Assembly (NCBI GenBank): GCA_024704765.1
Contig: JAKMXF010000221.1
Span: forward strand, 310,001 to 374,000
DNA from: Oopsacas minuta
Taxonomy: Eukaryota; Animalia; Porifera
DNA length: 64,000 bases
Direction of reading: 5' to 3'
Under the pieces are notes generated by a model that was given only the letters and a program-made list of their open reading frames with translations, had not been told where the DNA came from and searched no databases. Position numbers and translations under genes: made by a program. Positions 5,916-58,362 of the stretch are shown piece by piece. The first letter of the stretch is position 1, and every line of letters begins with the position of its first letter.

Positions 5916-8900
5916 TTAATTTTCCGGGTACCACTCAAGAGGTTGTACTTCCATTAATTCAATCTTTTCTGTATCATCAGCTAGATTGATACCTTCCTCA
6001 ATCAATTCTGTAGATAAATCGTTAATATAGGTTGCTGTTGTATTTTGAGGAATGTCTGATGAAGTTGCTTTATCTATATCTGGTAAATGAAATGAATCAT
6101 CTGTGTCTGTAAGTTCATTGTTTGCTGGTTGAGTTATAACATTATCAGGAGTATTAACTTCATTCTGATCATTTACTTCTTGTAGAAAGCACCAGACCGA
6201 GCAAGATCTGAATCTACTAACTTTATACAATACCTTCTCAGTCTGTTTCATTATATAATTGTATAATTCTAGCAATTTATAATTATCGATATCACAGCCT
6301 AACTCCAAGAGCTGTATTAATTGAGAAGCAAATGTCCATCTTATAAATGTTATTGGCTTAGAATCATCGTATTTATTATTCATAACTCTAGTCTGTTTGG
6401 TGTCATTGAAATAAGAGATTATCGCAGTTCTTGAAGATTCTTTGGGAATATAGCTCAATATTTCATCCAGTGAAGCCTGTAATCAAATACACACAGTTTT
6501 AAAGAATAAAATGATACTTTAGTTATTACTAAACTAACCCATCTTAATGTATTCTGTGTTTTATGATACTGTGCATACCTTCTCAAGGTTATTTTCCTGT
6601 GATATTTCATTTTTGTTACTACCTTAACGTAGATAGCCTGTACAAATATACTGGTTATTGAGAAATCCTCTTCAGGGTACTCTAGCAATGGTTCATACAA
6701 CTTTTTAGACAATTTGTGTACGCAGATATCAGATATAATTCTATCTCTGAGATCGATAATACTCCAGAATGCTTGTGGTTCATCATCAGGAAATACGAAT
6801 CCCTGACATGCTAAGATCCTACCTTCATTTGAATTCGGTGATACCTATAGACAATGTAGGTAAGTTTATATTATTAATTCTATCACTAAACACTACTAAC
6901 CATTCTTTCCCTTGGTAAGTTATATCTCTTTGGTGTGGTATTGCTTAAGAGATCCTTGATGGCTGAGACTGATACCCAGTTATTAGAAGTACTATTCAAT
7001 CTCCACACACAAAAAGGAAGTAATTCATCATTATTTCCATTCTTTCTGTTAATCGTAAGAGTAGGACGAACAATATCAACAATGCGGTAATTGTAATCCT
7101 GTGAGAGATCTATGAATTTGAGATCTGTATTTGCCTTAACATTAAGGTAGTCAGTTATCCCTGTAGAATAGTATACAGATTAGTTGCAGGTAAACATTTT
7201 ATATCGTATTATCAAGTTAAAATCATACTTCCTACACTATAGATATGATTAACTTACAACTTGAGAATTCTTGTGGTCTTGTTACCAATACATCTATGTT
7301 CCTAGCGAATCCATTCCAGTTTATGTCATTAACTACTTTGATTAACTGAGTGGGATTAGCTCCTACTGCTAATAACAGTATTATCAACTCTAAACGCTCG
7401 TTGTATGTTAAGAGGTTCATACATGCTATTTCATTAACAGTAAGATCATCTCTTTGTATGCAAATATACCTAGTTTCTGATATTGAAGCTTTCCAGCATT
7501 TCACTCTTAAACTTTCACACAGTTTGTCAACCTCACATCGATTAGAAGAGATAAATGCTCTCTCTAAATCAGAGAGAAGAACAACTTCATAATTCTTTGG
7601 GTTATGCAGAATGTGTATTTTAATAACGTTATTGAATGTTAAGCCCTGTTTAGATATTATCCTAACCATCCTTCTATTAACTAAAACTGTTTTAATTAGG
7701 ATTTCCATTTCATTGTGTTCATATTTGGTTATAAGATTAGGACATAGTCTGTAAGGCCATTCTGATGGTTTATGAGATAATAATGAAGTTATTTGCTTGG
7801 AGTTGAGACGATCCAGATACACCATATCTTTATGGAGTAGATTTGATGAATGTAGGAAAGTGAAATGGTCAAATTCATCTGGTAAATAAAATCCTTGAGC
7901 TTGTAGAAGAATGTGTTCTAAAGAGTTCCGTTGGAATGTTTTAATCAAGTGTTTGTACTTTTTTTCCAAGAGTTCAGTCGAAACTCCGAGACTGCTCGTT
8001 ACCTAAATTAGAAAGTTAGAGTATGTGCTAGAGTAGCGCAAAACAAAGTACTTACTGATTGTAGAATTAATCCATCTCTGTTCTTAGAAACCATCCATTT
8101 CCTCAATTTATTCGGTTGATATCCTTTATTACAAATGTTTGTAAAGTCGTGAACTTGTCGTGTGTTGAAGTCTTGTATTAATCTCAGCTGTTGAAATATA
8201 TGTAGAGCTACTGGGCCAGGTAGACCGAGGCTATGCAACAAACTCAGAGATTGTAGATCCTCTACTCTTACTAGTGTGTATGGGAGCTGTAACGATTCAC
8301 AGGCTTCATCTACAGAAATAAATTGAATTACTGGAAATATGACCTTCGAAGATAATAATTTTTACCTCCAACTTGTTTTATGATTTTTTGGTAGAATACT
8401 AAATCTTTCGTTTTGAAGATTTGGTCAATTGAAATTCTCATTTCTACAGCTACTTCCTCTAGAATATAGTAGAATTCACAATAATCTGGAATACTATACA
8501 CGGGGCATATATGTTTGGGCAATACTTTCATTTTCCTGACATTATTAGTGATCACTAGTTTCGTTTTATGCGGCCCAATCTTAAAGAATTCTGTGACGTA
8601 TTTCTGATCAGGATTTATTTCTTTTGTACATTCAAATCCGTTACTCGTAATATTTTTACAAGCAAAGTATGTTAGCCATATTTTGTGTAATGGTATGCCC
8701 GTTAATCTGAGAGATATGAACAGCTGGAGATCTGGTGTGGCTGTTAGGACAGATATGTCTAAGTGTTCAGGACACCCTCCCTTAAATGCTATCACAAGCT
8801 CTTGACTACACATCCCGAGATAATCTCCTAACTCTTCAGCAGAGAAGTATATACAGTTAGACTTTATCATGGTTACAGGCTTAAGAGGAGTAGGAGGTGA

Positions 8901-46918: not shown

Positions 46919-49900
46919 ATGCGAATACGTCCTATTTATCAGATATTGGCTCATGCTCGCACCTTAATTACAAAACTGATTTGTACGACAGTCAGATGTT
47001 CATCATCTAGTGGTAGAGATAAGTTCATACCCTTCAACTCTCTACCCATGAGACAACGTGTTAAAGAGAAACTCGAAGAGAAGGGATTTCCATTCCGTGA
47101 GGGGTATTCGAACTTTATTATGAACTGTCCGTTCTGTACAAGAGATGATAGAAATATGTATGTGGATATGGACTCCGGTAAATAATACGTATATGAATAT
47201 TATCCTAGTGTATTTATTTATGATAATTGTTGAAGATTGAAAATTAGGAAAGAAACACAGAATAGAATAAATCTGTAGTAAGCAGCTATTTTGATTTCAT
47301 ATACTACACACTACAGTTATCTATTGCTTTACAAACTCGTTAATCTGGTTTGGCATCTCATCAATCTGTGTACTATAATACTGCTCTATGTCTCGTAGAA
47401 TTCGAATGTCGTCATCTTTCGCGAAATTTATCGCGACGCCTTTCCTCCCGAACCTTCCAGATCTCCCGATCCTGTGGATATAGAGCTCTCGATTCGGAGG
47501 TAGATCGTAGTTAATAACAAGTGATACCTGCTCTACATCAATCCCTCTAGCCCACACATCTGTAGTAATCATAACTCTACTCTCTCCATCTCTGAACTCC
47601 TTCATTATAGCAGTCCTCTCTCTCTGATGCATCTCTCCGTGCATGTAAGATAGAGTAAAATTAGCCTCTCTGAGCTTCTCAGCTAATAGCTCAACCTTTC
47701 TACGTGAATTACAGAAAATTACAGCCTGTGTGATTACTAGCGTATCGTACAGATCCACTAGTGTATCGAACTTCCATTCTTCTCTCTCTACAGATACGAA
47801 GTATTGCTTTATTCCTTCTAGAGTTAACTCGTCCCTCTTCACCAGAATACGTACAGGCTCTGTCATGAACTTGTTGGTTATTTCCAGAATCTCGTGGGGT
47901 AGAGTAGCACTAACTAGCACTACTTGTAGAGAGGGAGGGAGATAGCGGTATATTTCGTAGATCTGTTCCTTGAATCCCTTATTCAACATCTCATCAGCTT
48001 CGTCTAGAACCAGCATCTTTATATTACGAGTACGGAGTGTGTGTCTCTTGATCATGTCCAGAACACGACCCGGCGTTCCGGATATAACGTGCTGTCCGAA
48101 CTCTAATTTCCTCAAATCTTCTCCTATATTCGTCCCTCCTATACAAGCATGGCAATGCAAGTTCATGTAATCCCCCAGAGCTAGCATGACAGCCTGTATC
48201 TGTATAGCCAGCTCTCTGGTAGGAGACAGTACTAACACTTGTATTTCTCTCAGCTGTGTGTCAATACGCTGTAGTACTGCAATGCTGTACGTAGCTGTCT
48301 TGCCAGTACCGGATTGAGCTTGTGCTGTCACGTCACGTCCTGATATGATCGGCCGGATAGCTCGCTGTTGGATGGCTGAGGGCTTCTCAAATCCGTACGC
48401 ATATATACCCCGCAACAAATTGTCTCTCAGGCCCATCTGGTCAAACGTTGGTAACACATCTACACCTTTGGTACTCTCGAATATTAGAGAATTGTCTGTA
48501 GAGATAAGCCCAGACTTCCCTGGCGTATCTTCCTCTAGTGACACATATCTCGCTGCCATATTGGTTGTATTGATTGTATTGCTAGAGATTAATATTAAAC
48601 AAATTTAGGTTCATACTCTTGTCAGCCTTGTTGTAAAAAAGGCACATGGACAGACTTATCGAATTGGACAACACTAGGCGATACAGGCTCAGTAGCTAGG
48701 ATAGAACCGCCGAAAAAAAAAGTTCCAAAGAAAAAGCAATCTGCAGCTGATTCCATTGAGGTGGAGAAAGATACAGAAGTTGTACAAGTTAAACTGGATG
48801 AATATGCAAATGAAAATACACGGCCGTTCAATTCTGAAGACAAAATTTTGACTGATAAAGTAAGTTATTCTACCATCCACACAAGCAATGAATTATTTGA
48901 AATAACAAACTCTGTAGGCAATAGGGACTAGAAGTTTGGACCTGACAACAATTCTGAAATTCAACCTGAGAGTACTCAATCCTAACCAATCAGAATCCTC
49001 TCAGAAAGATAATATTACATTATGCTGGCCTTGGTACAACAACTATACAGATAAGGTATTACGTGAATTACATAGTTTAAGATTATTTTCATTCTATTCT
49101 ATGACAGGAATTGATTGGTCTTAAGAGAGAACAGATTATTAAATCTAAAGACAGTAACCCGGTAACTTATTGCCTGAAAGACGGGAGATCTGGATTGTTT
49201 GGTTGGAACATGATAAACTCAAAATCTAAGACTGTAGTACTGACTGCTAGGGAGGTGGATGTGATAGCTCTAGTGCAAGACTGTAAGGTAACTAAATTTG
49301 TGATTCCACAATTCAATATTGTAATACGTAAATTTAAAACCTACCACAAATTCTAAATAAGAAAGTATACTGAGTCAATACTAGAATCTTGTTAGTGCAG
49401 TAATGTTAGTAAGAAATGGGTTTTGCATTGAGAAAACTGAAAAATACGAATCGGCTAAAGCAGCCTTCCAAGGCCCTTGAATATGCTCAGAAAGAAAGAC
49501 GTGTGTCTAAACCATATTTACATGTAAAAGATAGAAATTTTATTTCCCGGTTGAGGGAAATAAAACTCACAGAGATCCCTGAAGTTCAAGATACCATTGA
49601 ACAACGTTATTCTCCTCCCCCAAGATCCAAATCTAAAGATGCAAGATCTATACCAATTGGTATGCTAGATACAGACCAGATTACACTAATTCTAGCCAAT
49701 AAACGAAAATATCCAGAAACATGGAACAAGGCTTACGTCTCCAATCAATTCCAAATTAAAGAGGAACACGCAGAAGGACTTATCACAAGTTTTAACAATT
49801 ATGTAGAACCTCCAGCTAAACGGCTAAAAGAACCAGGAAATACTGAATCTAGACCTGTAGTAGATAATTAATTATTTTATTAACTAGATAATAAAAATAT

Positions 49901-52900
49901 AATTTTCAAACATAAATCTATGAATACTATCGAAGCTAAACACTTAATGTGTTTTACAACACTGCAATACTAAGCCACCCGAAAAGCATGATCACCCCTC
50001 CAATAGGAGGAATAAACATTGTTGGAATATCGAAGAAACCTTTGAGGTACAGTGAGCCGCAAAACATTACTGTACCTACCGTGATGAGACAGCCACAAAG
50101 AGGATGTGTGTTGGTAGAGGTAGAGAGTGCGAGTAGAGCTAGACTGCTTATAAAATGGTATTTGTTAGCAGAGAGCACTAATTCCTTATTCTCTGGTGAG
50201 ATACTATGTGAGTGAGCTGCGTATGCACCTAAGGCAACAGCAAATGCCCCTGATAGTCCAGCTACACGTCCCCAAACGCGAGGACAGGCTTTAAGCGAGG
50301 AAAGTCTGGCATTCATTGAATTATACACTTTAAGCTATTTTTGGTGTGAAAATAATAAAAATAATAATACGATAAAACAGATATATAATTATCAATAATC
50401 AATAATTTATCAGAGATAAATAAGGAATAAATTTAATACCATTATTAGACCTATATATGTATATACGTTAACTGATATCCGCCCAACTGTAATGTGACCT
50501 ACAGTATTAGTTTCAATAAGCAAATATCATAGAGCACCAGGCTAGTCCATATAACAGCTGGCCTATGAAAGGCAGATGTCCTAATGAAAGTTCATAGAAA
50601 GATCTGAGGTAAGTACCTCCGCAGAATAGGAGAGTACCTATACATAGAAGTCCTTTAGGTACTCCATATGGACGACCGTTTGGTAGCGCTATTAATAGCA
50701 CGCTCGCTGCTAACTGGTGTTGAACTGCAAGACTGATGTCATTCTTACTTTCCTCAGTCAGAGATTCACTTTTTAAAGCGTAGTACTTAACCACGAGTGC
50801 TGTTATACCTCCCACTCCAGCCATCTTAACCCACATGGTCCCACAAGGCATATGTTTGAAGTGGGAAGGAAAGTTAGGTCGCATTGAAGTAGACATATAA
50901 AGTAATGTTATGTGCTAAATAATTATGTGACTACTGCTAGAGTTAATACATACGTATATGAATAACAAGAAATAAATAATTGTATGTGAAGCAGGAAAGT
51001 TAAAAGATACTCCAAAGTATTGGAGATTTTGATATCTAAATTCCTTACAGATTTAACAGACAGACAGACAGACAGCAGTAATTCTCTTTCAGAGGTACTT
51101 AGGCTCCGGACAGTAAATTTTTGGTAAAAATCTCTTTCAAACGAATCATTAATTGCTGGAAACACATGAACACACAAGGCCCCGATCAGCGTAATATACT
51201 CTTCTGTACACTCCCTCCCTTCCAGGAGCTGACAGCTAATATTTACAGAGTAAGCTCGGAAAATCAACCATCTAATTATGATCGCTTCTCCACTCAACAG
51301 CTGAGTCGTTACCTAGCTAGAAATATTCCTAGTTTCCTTGTAGGTCCAGCTGACCAGACCTCTCTTTATCTAGAATATTCTGAGTCTAAGAAGAAGCTCG
51401 TGATTATAACCAGCTCGTTAGCTACACAGACAGAGCGATACAGGGATAAATTGTCAGAGTTAAGACTAACAGATGGAAATAGTATTGAGATGAATTCTCG
51501 TATTTTTGAGGAATGTTATCGCTTCACTCTATACTCTAGACTCAGTCCTAAATGGAATAGATTTGGCAATATGCTTGTACTAAGACATAACTTTCTTTCC
51601 GGTAACAAGTCAGAAACAGTCCTAGCAGTTAAGCTGGAGTCTAATATCCAAGCAGGAGAGCTGTGTCTATCCGTAATACCATACACTATAACATTCAGAC
51701 CATTGAACCTGCTGGAAGTGTTAAACATATCTCAGGGAAGGTTCATGCCAGACACACCTCAATCTTTACAGCTGTTGCTAGGACAGGATTTGAGTAGAAC
51801 GAGTGTAGCTTGTCAGATTCTTCCTAATCTAACCAGAGGATATCTACACTCTGTAACAACACATCCCCTCAATACTTCACCGCTACAAGATTACTCAGCT
51901 GTTTGTGAGTATTGGAAGTATGTACACGGATATGAGCTACCCCATGGAACAGCTGACTACTTTGTTAACGTGTCATTTCAGAGACAATCAAGTCGTGCTC
52001 TGACTTATCCTCTTCCGTGTGTACTAACAGACAGGAGTATAGTATGGAGATATAGTCCTGCTAGTATTGGTGAGGTTGTGAGTAGTTTCTTACAAGACAC
52101 GAACAAGAGAGTTGCTTCTCTGTGTGGTTATCAGTTATATTTATCTCACAGAGTACATCCTACTACATCTATACAGATACACCCTGAACCTCCTACACAG
52201 TCATACTCTAATTACTACAGGACACATAAACCTAAAGAGAATACAGCTCTCACTCATCGCATAGCAGCTCAAGCATCACAGCCTATAATTAGCGGAATTA
52301 CACAGCCTATAATTAGCGGAATTACACAGCCTAATACTCTATCAGCTACACCTCCTCTACTTAATATTACAACAACACAATCTATAAGTTCTGCTATAGC
52401 TACACAGCCTAAACCTAATATTACAGCTACACAGCTTACTGTTCCATCACCAGAGAGATATAGACCTATCTTCAAAGCTAATAAGCCCCTCACTTCCAAG
52501 TTACAAGATGTAACAAAGAAACAAACAGTACCAGTGGCTGAGTACACAAACTCTCAACCTGTCTCTACCCCTATCAAGCCTGTGTTCTCATCTCTCCCAA
52601 CTACCTTCAAATCTACACATAACAAGAATTCTATCAAAACTACTAACATATCTCATGTACAAATAACCGGTCCTAACTCTTCATGCAAGGGGAATATTAG
52701 CTCTGGCTCACAGAGAGATCATCCTCCCACCTCTCCTACAACTCAGCCTCCTCCCGCTAAGAAACCGCGAGTATCTAAAGCTAGTATAAATGAACTAATA
52801 AAAGCTGATCAGCTGGAGAAAGCTAACGTGTCAAGTCTAACTGATTGGCTTAGAGAGAAAAAGATAACTTTCAAATCAAAAGATAAGAAAGCACAGCTTA

Positions 52901-55900
52901 TCGTGCTGGTACGTCAGCACTCTCTGCTCATGTCAGAACCTTGACATAATTTTCTTATAGCAAATTACCAAAGAAATAGTACATAAATGGAGATACGTAT
53001 ATTCAGTGTAACGTGTGTATAGAATAAATAATACATATATCGAATCGTTAGTAAGATTTAGTTAACAAACTCATCTCTTCAATCCTCTACTTCTTGCAGC
53101 TGACTGCTAATGAATAGGAACATGTCTTGATAGTATAGCTTGCTGATAACGATAAGTTCTTTTGCTTTTATTTCCTTTTCTTCTCCATGACAGAACTTTA
53201 CTACTGCCATGCCCTCATTACATTCTCTCACTTCTCCTGGCATAAATAGTCCCGCGTCCGGACTAGCTAACACATAGCTTCCATCTACAACCCCAGATTC
53301 TTCATCCCCCGGTGCTCTGAATATATGCACGATAGACTGTTCTTCTATAGCTCCATCGGGGAATTGAATCATATAGTGACGTGTTTTCCATGATTTCCCT
53401 ACTACTTGTGCTGAGTAAAATACACCAGATTGTTCTCTCCTACACACCACAGATTCTGTTATCCAACTACTGTCATACTGACTAGCTATCTCGCTGAGAG
53501 CAGAGCAAACGGCCTCATCTACAGGCTGTATTCTACTCCATGATATATTACAGGTGACGTCATCATAAAACTTTATCTCAGCTTCTCCAGTTTCTCCATC
53601 TATCCGTAGGATCTGTCCGGGGACGTAGCAGGTAGGGAAAGAGGGATGCTCTGCTAGTACCCTCTGATCAGAATACACCTCTGGGAGTCTGCTCTCTGAG
53701 CTAGAGAAGGGTAATAACTTGTCTGTCTCTTCCCATACAGTCTCTCCATTAATCTTCATACGTAGAGTAACCCCGCTATCTCTATCAATATCTTCACTCA
53801 ATACTTCTGCTGCGTAGAACCATCCGTCTCTTCTGCTGTCCACGAGCACTGATTCTCCGCTTGAGAATGTTACTACTGGGGGAGGTGATACCTGAGGGGT
53901 GAGGTCTTGGATTAGCAGAGTAGGACCCTGATCGCTCCTGGACAACTCGTGTGGAGATTCTGCGCCCTCTTTATGAGGTACCAGCATTGTCTGTCCGTCT
54001 GCTTGCATAACTAAGTAAGCATTTGGGGACTCCTGTACTTCTGAATTCCGGGCCTTAAGAGCAGTCACCTCTCTAGTCACTCCCTCTAACTCCTCCAGCA
54101 GTTTCTTCTGAGAGTTTTCCATGTCCTCCATCCTCGGGTCTGGAGTAGGTTCCAATAAACAATCATCTAACTGAGTACTGGTACCCTGGGTGTAAGTAGA
54201 AGGGAGAGACTCGGTCCATTTGTCATGCATCCCTGTAACCTGAACTCCCTGATCCACTAGATATGGGATGGTATCCGGAATACTGGCGCTTGTCTGGGTG
54301 TGTGCCGGAGCACTGAAAGGTCTCATCCGTTCCAAACTTAGGGTATCAACATTCATGTCACAGGTTGGAGTAAGTTCAAAGGTTATCGATTCTGCTTGAG
54401 CATCTGGTACCTCTGAATCAGGAAGTACAGATTGGGGCCCTGTCTCTCCAATGGGGTCACGAGAAGATAAAGATATCACCTAAGTATTGAATAAATTAAG
54501 CTATCTGTGCTATATTATAGTATAGCTAGTATATACCAGTGATAAGCGCTCCATTAACTCAATGTGTTGCTCGCTCTGTTTCTCCACCAGTTTAGAGAGG
54601 GTATCCATTGAGGGGGATTTCTGTAGCTTAAACTCTCCCTCATCCTCTACACTGTCATAGAGAGCTGGGTGTCTTCTCTCTTCTTGCTCGATGGAAGAGG
54701 ATAATCCAACCATCAGTTGTTGAATATACCGACACACAGACAGAAAATAGGCACGGGAAATACGGATCATACCGGCACGCAGACTTGATACCGGTCTCCC
54801 GTTGAATGATGTAGCAGCATACACGGGTACACTGGAAGGAGGGAATGTAATACCCCCTTTGTAAGGAGTCACTTGTACAATTGCTGGAATGAAGTAATCA
54901 CACATACCTAATTGGATAATTATATATTAGAGATATTGTTAAGCTAATTCGTAGCTATACTTAGTTACTTACCTGTACTGAGATTAGGATGCTGACCGTA
55001 TTTAGACCTGACTCTAACCAGCACATAGTCACCTGGGTGTAGTACTGGACAGGGACGAGCTCCACCTCGTGGAACTACAAGTCTAGTGCTAATACGGTCT
55101 GTCTGTCCGTCTGCGAACTGAACTATTACGTTGTTTGAGGTTACATGTTTGAGTACTATTCCAGGGTAGAATAGGCCGTCTCGACTGGAGCGAGCACAAA
55201 CCTATAAGAAAAATACGTTAAATATTAGAAGAATATTCTAGAATAAATTCACTACCTGTGTCCCTTTCATTGACTGAGGAATAGGTTTTGTGTGTTGTTT
55301 CTCAGAAGCGAAAGATTCGCGGGAAAGTGATCTCGCCACCTCTTCTTCATTCTTAGAGATGTTATGTGTGTGTAGTAAAGGATTGTGTTTTCTTCTCTTT
55401 CCCTTCTTTTTACCCTGAGTTGAGTTACTGACAGATGACAGCTCTGACAGACTCTGACTTAGCTCTGATTTTAGATCTTCTTGTCTAGATGTCTCTCTTT
55501 CCTTAACATTCAGTGAGCTGGGAGGTGATTGGGTTGCCATTGACAGGATTACTTATAGAGCCAACAAATAATTGAAAATATATAAAGTGGCCGTTAAGAA
55601 TGGTTGTATCCCCTTAGATTGAATTCAGTTAAATTCGATAATAATTAAATGATTGCAATAAATAAAAAGGAATTATTTATTTTCTTTCTCTTCTATTTCT
55701 TGATTATTCGTAGTATTTGTTGTATTCTGTGTTGAGTTGTTTGTCTCATTAGCTTTGCTCTTCTCTTCTATTTTTGATTTTATTCTCTCGTCTGAAGGAT
55801 CAATCGCGATTATTTTTTTCTGTAATTCTTTCCATTTAGCTCGGATTGGGTCTAGGATCGTTGGCTCAGGTCCGAAGTTGTCAGTATTCGCGAATAGAAG

Positions 55901-58086
55901 ATAATATACAGTTACCGTCACCACTACTACAGTCTTTACCGCTATAAATGCTTTCCTATTACGCAACCAGTAAGGATTAAATAACAATTCTCCTTCCTCA
56001 TACTCATCTATTATCTTTCGAGGTCTAGGTCTCTTTATTTTCTTTATGTAATTCCCCATTAATTCAGAATTTCTATATTTCTTAAATTTACTTTTAATAA
56101 TCGTGAAAAATATTTGTAATTATTTATTAAGTATTTATCTAGGCCACGGCGTTAGCACTTCCACAAGGCCTAGCAACACTCCCTCCTGAACTCCTCCCCC
56201 AACTAGAGATGTTTGACAATATTATCTTATGGCTAGGTGACGACATTAGAGCCAGACAGGCTGCTCTACAATTCGCGAAAAAATTAAATCTAAAGAGATG
56301 TTATATGGTGCGGAAATCTACAGACTTTGCACCAGACACACCATTCACACCTCTCAACGTAAGATCATTACTCTAAATTATACCAATAAAGTAATTAGAA
56401 GGTTTATGTAATAACGCCAGTGCCCCCTTTAATCGTTTCGGTTAAAATATAATATACAGAACATTAGTATACTATAAGTGAAGTGCCACACAGCTGGTTT
56501 TCTTTTCTGACCATTGAGATTTTGTTTACGTGAATTCTGATGTTTTCTTCACAATAATAACAAGTGTCTGTCCTATTGCTCCGAGAAATAGAAAGCACAT
56601 ATCTATGCTAAATACGATTATCTCTACTCTCAATACATAAGTCTGCCAGAGAGTGAAGTATAGGTCCCCTGCCAGGTCTGGCACTACCAATGCCAGTCCT
56701 ACCCCAAGTCCTAAATAACTTGAGGTCAGATTTCCTTTAATACTCATATAAGTGTGTGCTGTGTGTAAGAACGATAGAACCAAGAATAGTAGTATTAGCT
56801 CTAGAGCAAGGGAAGCTAGTTCATAAGGCAATACAAGCCCTTTGTATATGAATACGAATAATTCAAGTGAGAATAGCAACACTAAATACACACCTCTGAA
56901 GTAGAGTAGCATTTGAGAGGCTAGCTGGAAATAATGTATAACTGCTATCCCCATCTAACTAATGTAATGCTATTAAATAAACTTTTTAAAATAAATAGAA
57001 AATTGTATATACAAAACAGCTGTATTTACGTATAACAAGATTATATTTTGTAGCTATTGAATGAAGGCATACATTTAGGAGGGATTCTAGAATCTGCTCT
57101 AAAGTTACGTCATGATAAGATAATGACATTCTGGGATATTCGTAATGAGGTTTGGTATGAGTTGTATCACTCAGATAAAATAGAGGGACTTAAATGGGAG
57201 AGGTATCCTGATCTTACTAAGCTACTGAAAGGCTACCGTAGAGGAGAGCTGTCCATTTATACAGGGCAAACAGGTAACTTATTGTATAACATTAATACAG
57301 TGGATACTGGTTATAAGGACCACCTTGGGAGTAGCAATACATCTACTTTTAGCTGGCCTGTTTTTATAACCGGCATCCACTGTATTAACATTCATTTTTT
57401 TATTTCAAGGTTCTGGAAAGACAACTCTCCTAAGCGAGCTGTCTCTAGATCTATGTATGCAGAACGTATGCACTCTATGGGGGAGCTTTGAAATAAGTAC
57501 AATAAGATTAGCCAAGACAATGTTGAGACAGTACTCAAGAGTTAATCTAGAAGAAAATAACGAACTATTCGAAATCTGGGCAGATAAATACGAATCTCTG
57601 CCTATGTATTTTATGAATTTCTACGGAGCTACTAAGATTGAAGATATTATAGAGACAATAGACTATGCGGTATATATGTATGACGTAGAGCATGTTATAG
57701 TGGATAATCTACAATTCATGGTTTCATTGGAATTCCAAAATGATAAATATTTCGTACAGGACAAGATTGTAGCCGCTTTGAGAAGATTCGCCACTGAGAA
57801 AGCTGTCCACATATCTCTAGTTGTACATCCAAGGAAGGAGAACGATGAGGTGGTACTCGAGAAATCATCTATATATGGAACTGCTAAAGCTATACAGGAA
57901 GCTGATAATATTATGATTCTACATTCAAATCCTGGACAGGCTAAAGCACTGGAGGTATGCAAGAACAGGTTTGATGGAACTCTTGGGTTAGTTAGACTAC
58001 AGTACAGTACATCTGATAGTACATTTTCTAACTTAAAATCATCTAGAAGTAATATAATAGCTATGATGAATCAAGAAAAATGGTAG
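46919..58086 (+). CDS. TWNK: Twinkle mtDNA primase-helicase, 7 exons (46919-47177, 48609-48859, 48918-49055, 49108-49287, 56143-56358, 57054-57273, 57410-58086)
   Basis: CPFC...CQPC zinc-binding region, [47 protein letters not shown]|[29 protein letters not shown]; all junctions in frame. Confidence 0.93.
47321..48559 (-). CDS. EIF4A3: Exon-junction-complex DEAD-box helicase, intronless, in TWNK intron 1
   Basis: [60 protein letters not shown]. Confidence 0.95.
49416..49871 (+). CDS. NDUFAF4: Complex I assembly factor 4-like (UPF0240), same-strand nested in TWNK intron 4
   Basis: [36 protein letters not shown] resembles the NDUFAF4 PETWT motif region. Confidence 0.65.
   Translation: MGFALRKLKNTNRLKQPSKALEYAQKERRVSKPYLHVKDRNFISRLREIKLTEIPEVQDTIEQRYSPPPRSKSKDARSIPIGMLDTDQITLILANKRKYPETWNKAYVSNQFQIKEEHAEGLITSFNNYVEPPAKRLKEPGNTESRPVVDN
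49954..50328 (-). CDS. TMEM256: TMEM256 / DUF423 membrane protein
   Basis: [33 protein letters not shown]...GWL. Confidence 0.88.
   Translation of the reverse strand: MYNSMNARLSSLKACPRVWGRVAGLSGAFAVALGAYAAHSHSISPENKELVLSANKYHFISSLALLALSTSTNTHPLCGCLITVGTVMFCGSLYLKGFFDIPTMFIPPIGGVIMLFGWLSIAVL
50513..50896 (-). CDS. Divergent TMEM256 paralogue (tandem duplicate)
   Basis: Same length and hydrophobic pattern ([14 protein letters not shown]...AW) adjacent to the canonical copy. Confidence 0.7.
   Translation of the reverse strand: MSTSMRPNFPSHFKHMPCGTMWVKMAGVGGITALVVKYYALKSESLTEESKNDISLAVQHQLAASVLLIALPNGRPYGVPKGLLCIGTLLFCGGTYLRSFYELSLGHLPFIGQLLYGLAWCSMIFAY
51166..52944 (+). CDS. C18orf63: C18orf63-like protein with low-complexity linker and C-terminal SAP/HeH-like helix pair; same-strand nested in TWNK intron 4
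   Basis: [22 protein letters not shown] and TYPLPCV match the C18orf63 N-terminal domain; [22 protein letters not shown] tail. Confidence 0.78.
   Translation: MNTQGPDQRNILFCTLPPFQELTANIYRVSSENQPSNYDRFSTQQLSRYLARNIPSFLVGPADQTSLYLEYSESKKKLVIITSSLATQTERYRDKLSELRLTDGNSIEMNSRIFEECYRFTLYSRLSPKWNRFGNMLVLRHNFLSGNKSETVLAVKLESNIQAGELCLSVIPYTITFRPLNLLEVLNISQGRFMPDTPQSLQLLLGQDLSRTSVACQILPNLTRGYLHSVTTHPLNTSPLQDYSAVCEYWKYVHGYELPHGTADYFVNVSFQRQSSRALTYPLPCVLTDRSIVWRYSPASIGEVVSSFLQDTNKRVASLCGYQLYLSHRVHPTTSIQIHPEPPTQSYSNYYRTHKPKENTALTHRIAAQASQPIISGITQPIISGITQPNTLSATPPLLNITTTQSISSAIATQPKPNITATQLTVPSPERYRPIFKANKPLTSKLQDVTKKQTVPVAEYTNSQPVSTPIKPVFSSLPTTFKSTHNKNSIKTTNISHVQITGPNSSCKGNISSGSQRDHPPTSPTTQPPPAKKPRVSKASINELIKADQLEKANVSSLTDWLREKKITFKSKDKKAQLIVLVRQHSLLMSEP
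52277..52332 (+). repeat. 24-nt coding tandem repeat (QPIISGIT x2.3)
   Basis: cacagcctataattagcggaatta repeated perfectly twice plus a partial copy. Confidence 0.95.
53079..55540 (-). CDS. C11orf16/VWA3B-type (DUF4537, Tudor-like repeat) protein, 4 exons, nested in TWNK intron 4
   Basis: Spliced KGTQ|[16 protein letters not shown]...[17 protein letters not shown]...|[10 protein letters not shown]; further repeats [12 protein letters not shown] and [12 protein letters not shown]. Confidence 0.7.
55673..56059 (-). CDS. Small single-pass membrane protein, possibly UQCC4-like
   Basis: One TM segment followed by [16 protein letters not shown] and a charged tail; the family call is weak. Confidence 0.45.
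   Translation of the reverse strand: MGNYIKKIKRPRPRKIIDEYEEGELLFNPYWLRNRKAFIAVKTVVVVTVTVYYLLFANTDNFGPEPTILDPIRAKWKELQKKIIAIDPSDERIKSKIEEKSKANETNNSTQNTTNTTNNQEIEEKENK
56526..56954 (-). CDS. TMEM216: Ciliary transition-zone protein TMEM216 (TMEM17/80/216 family), in TWNK intron 5
   Basis: [28 protein letters not shown]. Confidence 0.85.
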   Translation of the reverse strand: MGIAVIHYFQLASQMLLYFRGVYLVLLFSLELFVFIYKGLVLPYELASLALELILLFLVLSFLHTAHTYMSIKGNLTSSYLGLGVGLALVVPDLAGDLYFTLWQTYVLRVEIIVFSIDMCFLFLGAIGQTLVIIVKKTSEFT

Positions 58087-58362
58087 AGAATATTACACCA
58101 TATAGAAAATCAACTATTCATATAAGAATGGAATAAAGAGATTATTTTCATTATTTTTACTTGTAGCCATGATTCCCAATGGGTGAACTAATGATCTGCA
58201 GAATAACCTATGGTTCATCCACTTAGTATAATAATACGTCTGAGTACGTTCACGTGTATAGTAGATTATTATCATTTGACTTAGGTAGGCATAGAGCTTA
58301 TGACTAGTCCCAGAACTTGTATAATAGTGATTCTAATACATTGTCAGAATATACATTAGATA

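Follow-up and report, generated by a model that had tools for sequence, protein, structure and literature searches.

The TWNK host gene

The window analysed here is a stretch of 64,000 nucleotides (nt) of the genome of the glass sponge Oopsacas minuta (contig JAKMXF010000221.1, positions 310,001 to 374,000), with a GC content of 33-42%. Between positions 46919 and 58086 of this window, seven exons on the + strand make up a gene for the helicase Twinkle (TWNK), and three of its introns carry eight complete genes of other kinds, one in intron 1, six in intron 4 and one in intron 5. Six of these guest genes are antisense to TWNK and two lie on its own strand. Only 17% of the 11.2-kb span of TWNK is its own coding sequence; the eight guests take up 67%. 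We propose, with a probability of roughly 85%, that the locus holds a single functional TWNK gene of 11.2 kb whose seven exons are joined in the mRNA over three introns containing eight independent functional genes, and that this is an old, inherited feature. The proposal draws in large part on comparison of the window with six relatives (L003 and L005-L009), which are long contigs of metagenome assemblies found by a homology search with the DUF4708 guest (63-43% identity).

The seven exons join to 1941 nt with an open reading frame (ORF) of 646 amino acids (aa) and no internal stop. The six introns, of 1431, 58, 52, 6855, 695 and 136 nt in order, are all of the GT-AG type. Exon 1 (46919..47177) contains the start codon, a basic N-terminus and the first CxxC of a zinc finger, and ends in phase 1; its GT donor is found at the identical codon position in all seven genomes. 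Intron 1 (47178..48608), whose length in the relatives is 1381-1818 nt, contains the eIF4A3-like guest. Exon 2 (48609..48859) supplies the other CxxC of this zinc finger together with a variable linker, and is followed by exon 3 (48918..49055) and by exon 4 (49108..49287), which encodes the first half of the TOPRIM region and ends in QDCK directly before the GT donor. Intron 4 (49288..56142), 85% of which is occupied by its six guests, ranges from 6569 to 8438 nt across the seven genomes, with a conserved donor (AAG|GT) and a conserved acceptor (TAG|GC). The second half of the TOPRIM region is encoded by exon 5 (56143..56358), which is immediately preceded by an in-frame TAG. Intron 5 (56359..57053; 602-875 nt in the relatives) contains the TMEM216-like guest. 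Exon 6 (57054..57273) encodes a linker and the start of the Walker A motif and ends in phase 1, and after intron 6 (57274..57409) exon 7 (57410..58086) encodes the DnaB-like, RecA-type helicase domain with the Walker A motif GSGKTT and the stop codon.

This model bears out what an original prediction, made from the letters of the window, had said of the host. The prediction had the exons joining in frame over introns 1, 4 and 5, as the six GT-AG introns and the stop-free ORF now confirm, and it had placed intron 4 and the TOPRIM exon at precisely the right positions. It had also noted that this exon is absent from the ORF track; exon 5 is overlapped only by an ATG-started ORF of 55 aa (56209-56376), which is shorter than the usual listing limit of 60 aa and was therefore not included. 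Finally, the other TWNK introns had been described as about 50-140 nt long, which holds for introns 2, 3 and 6, and introns 1, 4 and 5 are long only because of their guest cargo.

Two of the short introns show peculiarities of their own. The length of intron 6 is due to an insert of 97 nt (57292-57388) with inverted ends of 25 nt (57292-57316 and 57364-57388) which are 92% complementary. Over this insert the source reads give a summed contig depth about eight times that of single-copy sequence, with many contigs diverging to either side of it, so that it looks like a high-copy miniature inverted-repeat transposable element (MITE). The element went undetected in the six relatives, whose intron 6 measures 56-167 nt, and no second copy was found in the window. 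In L007, intron 2 (6923-7220) measures 298 nt, likely by an insertion; its length in the remaining six genomes is 52-66 nt.

Identity of the host protein

The assignment to Twinkle is based on several parts of the protein. Exon 7 matches the Pfam families AAA_25 (E=3.9e-15) and DnaB_C (E=2.5e-6), and 287 proteins matched it at E<=1e-30 with a top identity of 54-55%. The Walker A motif straddles the joint of exons 6 and 7. Exon 5 by itself matches residues 280-336 of human Twinkle (E=5.6e-16), and exon 4 shows a weak match to the TOPRIM domain of T7 gp4 (E=0.49). When the spliced product was compared to eight full-length Twinkles, it aligned end to end and no gaps fell at the joints 4/5, 5/6 and 6/7. 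The protein thus has the features of its class, a C-terminal SF4 helicase domain with Walker A and a TOPRIM primase-like region within one polypeptide. The N-terminus is basic and contains no acidic residues, and is likely to be a mitochondrial presequence.

Exon 5 is not translatable by itself. The 22 codons 5' of its first ATG (56209) are conserved with human Twinkle, and, given the in-frame TAG just before them, their translation requires splicing of exon 5 to an exon further upstream.

The four cysteines of the zinc finger (47120-47135 and 48618-48632) have the form CPFC...CQPC in all seven Twinkles, one of them with CHFC, and are lost in the vertebrate-like homologue of the alignment.

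Conservation in six relatives and integrity of the locus

The gene order is common to all six relatives, all eight guests included. In its 5' part it consists of a LamG/EGF gene, TWNK exon 1, DEAD (-), TWNK exons 2-4, UPF0240 (+) and two copies of DUF423 (-), and in its 3' part of DUF4708 (+), DUF4537 (-), a small gene (-), TWNK exon 5, Transmemb_17 (-), TWNK exons 6-7, a lipase gene and an NHL gene. TWNK exons end at matching residues in the relatives, and GT and AG are found at homologous positions in all six introns of the seven genomes. The spliced Twinkles of the relatives are intact, with 634-638 aa, and are 59-80% identical to that of the window. Comparison of synteny and intron positions with related genomes had been named as a check by the original prediction, and order, guests and splice positions are indeed kept in six out of six.

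Divergence by codon position points in the same direction. In every TWNK exon the third position differs most (30-66%), followed by the first and then by the second, a pattern which argues for long purifying selection on both halves of TWNK; synonymous sites can be judged close to saturation across the seven genomes. The recurrence of exons, splice sites and guests in six other genomes excludes chance. As the layout is kept and the ORFs are intact despite the difference of 30-66% at third positions, a misassembly, a pseudogene or two separately translated halves become very unlikely.

Four sequencing runs of the source sample and one of a close relative were found for the locus; the reads examined are DNA, and their depth is flat and contains no exon joints. 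The stretch 52304-58299 is spanned with 0 differences by DNA contigs from the source sample, and depth is continuous across it. A second organism, about 95% identical, contributes DNA contigs that cover most of 52301-57791.

The eight guest genes

Every guest lies wholly between two consecutive TWNK exons, and this layout is repeated in the six relatives. All eight have intact ORFs and seven have Pfam matches, which confirms the number of guests, the placement of six of them in intron 4 and the identities that had been predicted. Identity between the window and the relatives ranges from 34% (TMEM256-like copy a, in L009) to 96% (eIF4A3). On these grounds the guests are best regarded as functional genes rather than pseudogenes.

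Intron 1 contains an intronless gene for an eIF4A3-like DEAD-box helicase of 412 aa (47321..48559, - strand; DEAD E=5e-46, Helicase_C E=1.4e-33). Its product is 92-96% identical in the relatives, and its ATG is located 49 nt from TWNK exon 2.

The six guests of intron 4 are separated by spacers of 82-269 nt. The first is an NDUFAF4-like gene of the UPF0240 family (49416..49871, + strand, 151 aa), whose Pfam match is borderline (E=1.6e-5; 25.5 bits against a cutoff of 25) and whose relatives are 51-65% identical; an AATAAA follows 18 nt past its stop. There follow two TMEM256-like genes of the DUF423 family on the - strand, of 124 aa (49954..50328) and 127 aa (50513..50896). The tandem copies are only 30-35% identical to each other and each of the six relatives retains both, as would fit an old duplication kept within the host intron. 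An ORF of 124 aa on the - strand (50923-51297) was rejected as a gene, since it is matchless in all relatives.

The second same-strand guest is a C18orf63-like gene of the DUF4708 family (51166..52944, + strand), which encodes 592 aa counted from the first ATG, has a weak C-terminal HeH/LEM match and is followed by an AATAAA 78 nt past its stop. The spacer of 269 nt on its 5' side contains a short (CAGA)n run (51070-51095). Next is a C11orf16-like gene of the DUF4537/Tudor-like family (53079..55540, - strand, 761 aa), which has the four exons predicted for it (55540-55256, 55201-54973, 54907-54537 and 54479-53079), separated by introns of 54, 65 and 57 nt. The window and, it appears, L006 have the third of these introns (54480-54536); in L003 (11923-13665) and L005 (12003-13781) the flanking exons form a single ORF of 580 and 592 aa, respectively, in what looks like a precise loss in the sub-lineage of these two.

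The last guest of intron 4 encodes a single-pass membrane protein of 128 aa (55673..56059, - strand), the only one with no Pfam match. It is 53-81% identical in the relatives, and a distance of 83 nt separates its ATG from TWNK exon 5. A protein language model gave a weak resemblance to small subunits of the mitochondrial inner membrane such as COX6C, NDUFB4 and SMIM20 at scores of 0.8-0.9, which shuffled proteins reach as well, and this was not used as evidence. Intron 5 contains a gene of the TMEM216/TMEM17 family (Transmemb_17, E=4.2e-16; 56526..56954, - strand, 142 aa), which is 64-87% identical in the relatives and has its start codon 99 nt from TWNK exon 6.

Outgroups and age of the nest

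Among 277 fetched proteins, the best full-length match of the spliced TWNK product was that of the demosponge Dysidea avara (42.6% identity over 605 aa). The TWNK gene of this sponge (L010) encodes the same protein architecture from end to end, but it is divided into 17 exons over 11.4 kb and has other neighbours (USO1-like and DENN genes). No guest homologue was found inside the Dysidea gene or within 10 kb of it. When the three guest-bearing introns were compared to the 16 introns of Dysidea, the nearest one lay 11 codons away for intron 1 and 4 codons away for intron 5, and none lay within 15 codons for intron 4. A further Twinkle gene (locus L001, protein P0001), whose nearest named relatives are cnidarian, consists of a single exon.

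From the shared layout the nest can be taken to predate the common ancestor of the seven genomes. Since neither guests nor identical intron positions are present in the TWNK gene of Dysidea, its origin probably falls on the glass-sponge branch, later than the divergence from demosponges. The arrangement can be regarded as inherited within a clade of compact genomes, which are very probably those of glass sponges.

How the locus may be expressed

The conserved splice sites and reading frames argue strongly for joining of the TWNK exons in the mRNA, and we infer that they are joined in cis and that the guests have promoters of their own. RNA polymerase II would initiate 5' of 46919 and transcribe the whole block, passing the AATAAA signals of both same-strand guests, and the spliceosome would then pair the ordinary GT donor at 47178 with the AG acceptor that ends at 48608, the one at 49288 with that at 56142 and the one at 56359 with that at 57053. 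Transcription of the guests would start at short promoters, and with start codons so close (49, 83 and 99 nt) to exons 2, 5 and 6, some of these promoters must extend into host exons. Guests inside the introns of an essential host could not be moved without breaking the host, which may help to explain the frozen order.

Several points weigh against this proposal. The host transcript has to read through two same-strand guests with canonical AATAAA signals 18-78 nt past their stops, signals which taken alone are weak evidence in AT-rich DNA. The 6.9-kb intron is more than 100 times as long as the neighbouring introns of 52-58 nt. Pairing between the ends of intron 4, tested in the seven genomes, did not exceed chance in any of them (z -1.2 to +1.2), and end-to-end pairing was therefore rejected as a device bringing the splice sites of this intron together. 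A profile search with P0001 and the glass-sponge peptides of exons 5-7 returned many animal Twinkles and no full-length one of a glass sponge, and exact look-ups for transcript contigs found none for the TMEM216-like product or for the exon 7 ORF.

Of the other ways to read the locus, the one which fares best, and which we still consider rather unlikely, is that the TWNK transcript serves as a shared precursor. From it the NDUFAF4-like and C18orf63-like messengers would be released by spliced-leader trans-splicing and polyadenylation, and the uncleaved fraction would be spliced across the 6.9 kb. If this were true, host output would be set by a competition between 3'-end formation of the guests and splicing of the host. 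In a related scenario, the block would be held together by a role of several of its genes in mitochondria. Both Twinkle and NDUFAF4 belong to this organelle and TMEM256 is listed as mitochondrial, while the leads for the small membrane protein are weak.

Less probable by some way is a transcription of exons 1-4 and exons 5-7 as two separate units, with a promoter within intron 4 and joining of the two pre-mRNAs by trans-splicing. The conserved GT and AG sites are equally expected in this case, the same-strand guests with their AATAAA signals would obstruct a continuous transcript, and spliced-leader machinery is present in glass sponges, according to the passages on it in PMC10282587. Against this, the start codon of the opposite-strand guest upstream of exon 5 is just 83 nt away from it, a space that could hardly accommodate a dedicated promoter, and with the ends of intron 4 unpaired there is nothing obvious to bring the two RNAs together.

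It is more doubtful still that the primase-like exons 1-4 and the helicase exons 5-7 encode two proteins which are never joined. Many bacteria do make primase and helicase as separate proteins, and an ATG is available in exon 5 at 56209. The 22 codons shared with human Twinkle nevertheless precede this ATG, starting directly after the in-frame TAG; the break would cut through the middle of the TOPRIM fold; the C-terminal product would lack a mitochondrial presequence; and all seven genomes keep both the donor of exon 4 and the acceptor of exon 5. That the guests were misplaced in assembly, or that the TWNK pieces are remnants of a decaying gene, has nothing to recommend it beyond the unusual length of the introns and can be dismissed on the layout shared by seven separately recovered assemblies, the source-read contigs spanning the region with 0 differences, the contigs of the second organism showing the same order over most of it, and the intact ORFs under purifying selection in the seven genomes.

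The locus in the context of glass-sponge genomes

Nesting in glass sponges has been described genome-wide. For Aphrocallistes vastus, the passages of Francis et al. (2023, PMC10282587) drawn on here report 2432 nested genes (12.4% of genes), many of them conserved, as well as extensive microsynteny shared with O. minuta and a leader of about 37 nt added by trans-splicing. According to the same passages, the annotation of O. minuta contains only 83 nested genes, and low counts in some genomes are generally ascribed to the settings of gene prediction. The TWNK locus is one well-resolved case of this published property, and, as nesting is already known for glass sponges, it leaves the current understanding unchanged. 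By the same token the premise of the original prediction, that one or two guests per host are usual, does not apply to this group in view of the counts for A. vastus (PMC10282587, in the passages cited). The prediction had further spoken of an extreme packing strategy, a term which we would not retain: the data point only to a very old arrangement, and this is equally expected under neutral nesting which is hard to undo.

The O. minuta assembly consists of 365 scaffolds with a GC content of 36%, an N50 of 0.67 Mb and 1.59 introns per gene, and for its annotation RNA sequencing reads were mapped with an intron limit of 5000 nt (Santini et al. 2023, PMC10280926). TWNK intron 4 exceeds this limit and therefore could not be supported, and the public Twinkle model of O. 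minuta is probably cut at this intron. The predictors used for this species rarely call nested genes, and a cut Twinkle could appear truncated or absent in comparisons of gene content. The practical worth of the present work lies in a corrected Twinkle model. Beyond that, the locus gives a clean and fully resolved example of the extent of nesting in glass sponges, in an essential gene of mitochondrial replication. It may also serve as a compact test bed for how a spliceosome whose usual introns measure about 55 nt copes with one of 6.9 kb, and for how a polymerase gets past polyadenylation signals on its own strand and five to six transcription units running against it. The order, frozen over seven genomes, illustrates how nesting may lock genes in place.

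Comparison with known systems

The closest likeness is to the nesting in A. vastus, where, in a compact genome of mostly single-exon genes, complete genes lie in the introns of others, where nesting and microsynteny are conserved among hexactinellids, and where automatic annotation handles nested loci badly (PMC10282587, in the passages drawn on). These passages differ from the present work in giving genome-wide counts, and they describe no TWNK locus and no number of guests per host; here the exons of a single locus are worked out one by one across seven genomes. Operons resolved by spliced leaders resemble TWNK in that its same-strand guests are arranged head to tail within the host unit, with AG-rich, acceptor-like sites seen by eye before their starts, but no more than two of the eight guests share the strand of the host.

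In other animals, intron 27b of human NF1 contains EVI2A, EVI2B and OMG, and the large intron of Drosophila dunce contains several nested genes. Both share with TWNK the presence of several complete genes in one host intron, mostly on the opposite strand. Their introns, in distinction to that of TWNK, are tens of kb long and mostly non-coding, whereas TWNK intron 4 is largely made up of its guests, with spacers of 82-269 nt between them, and guest starts at this locus lie within 49-99 nt of the host exons.

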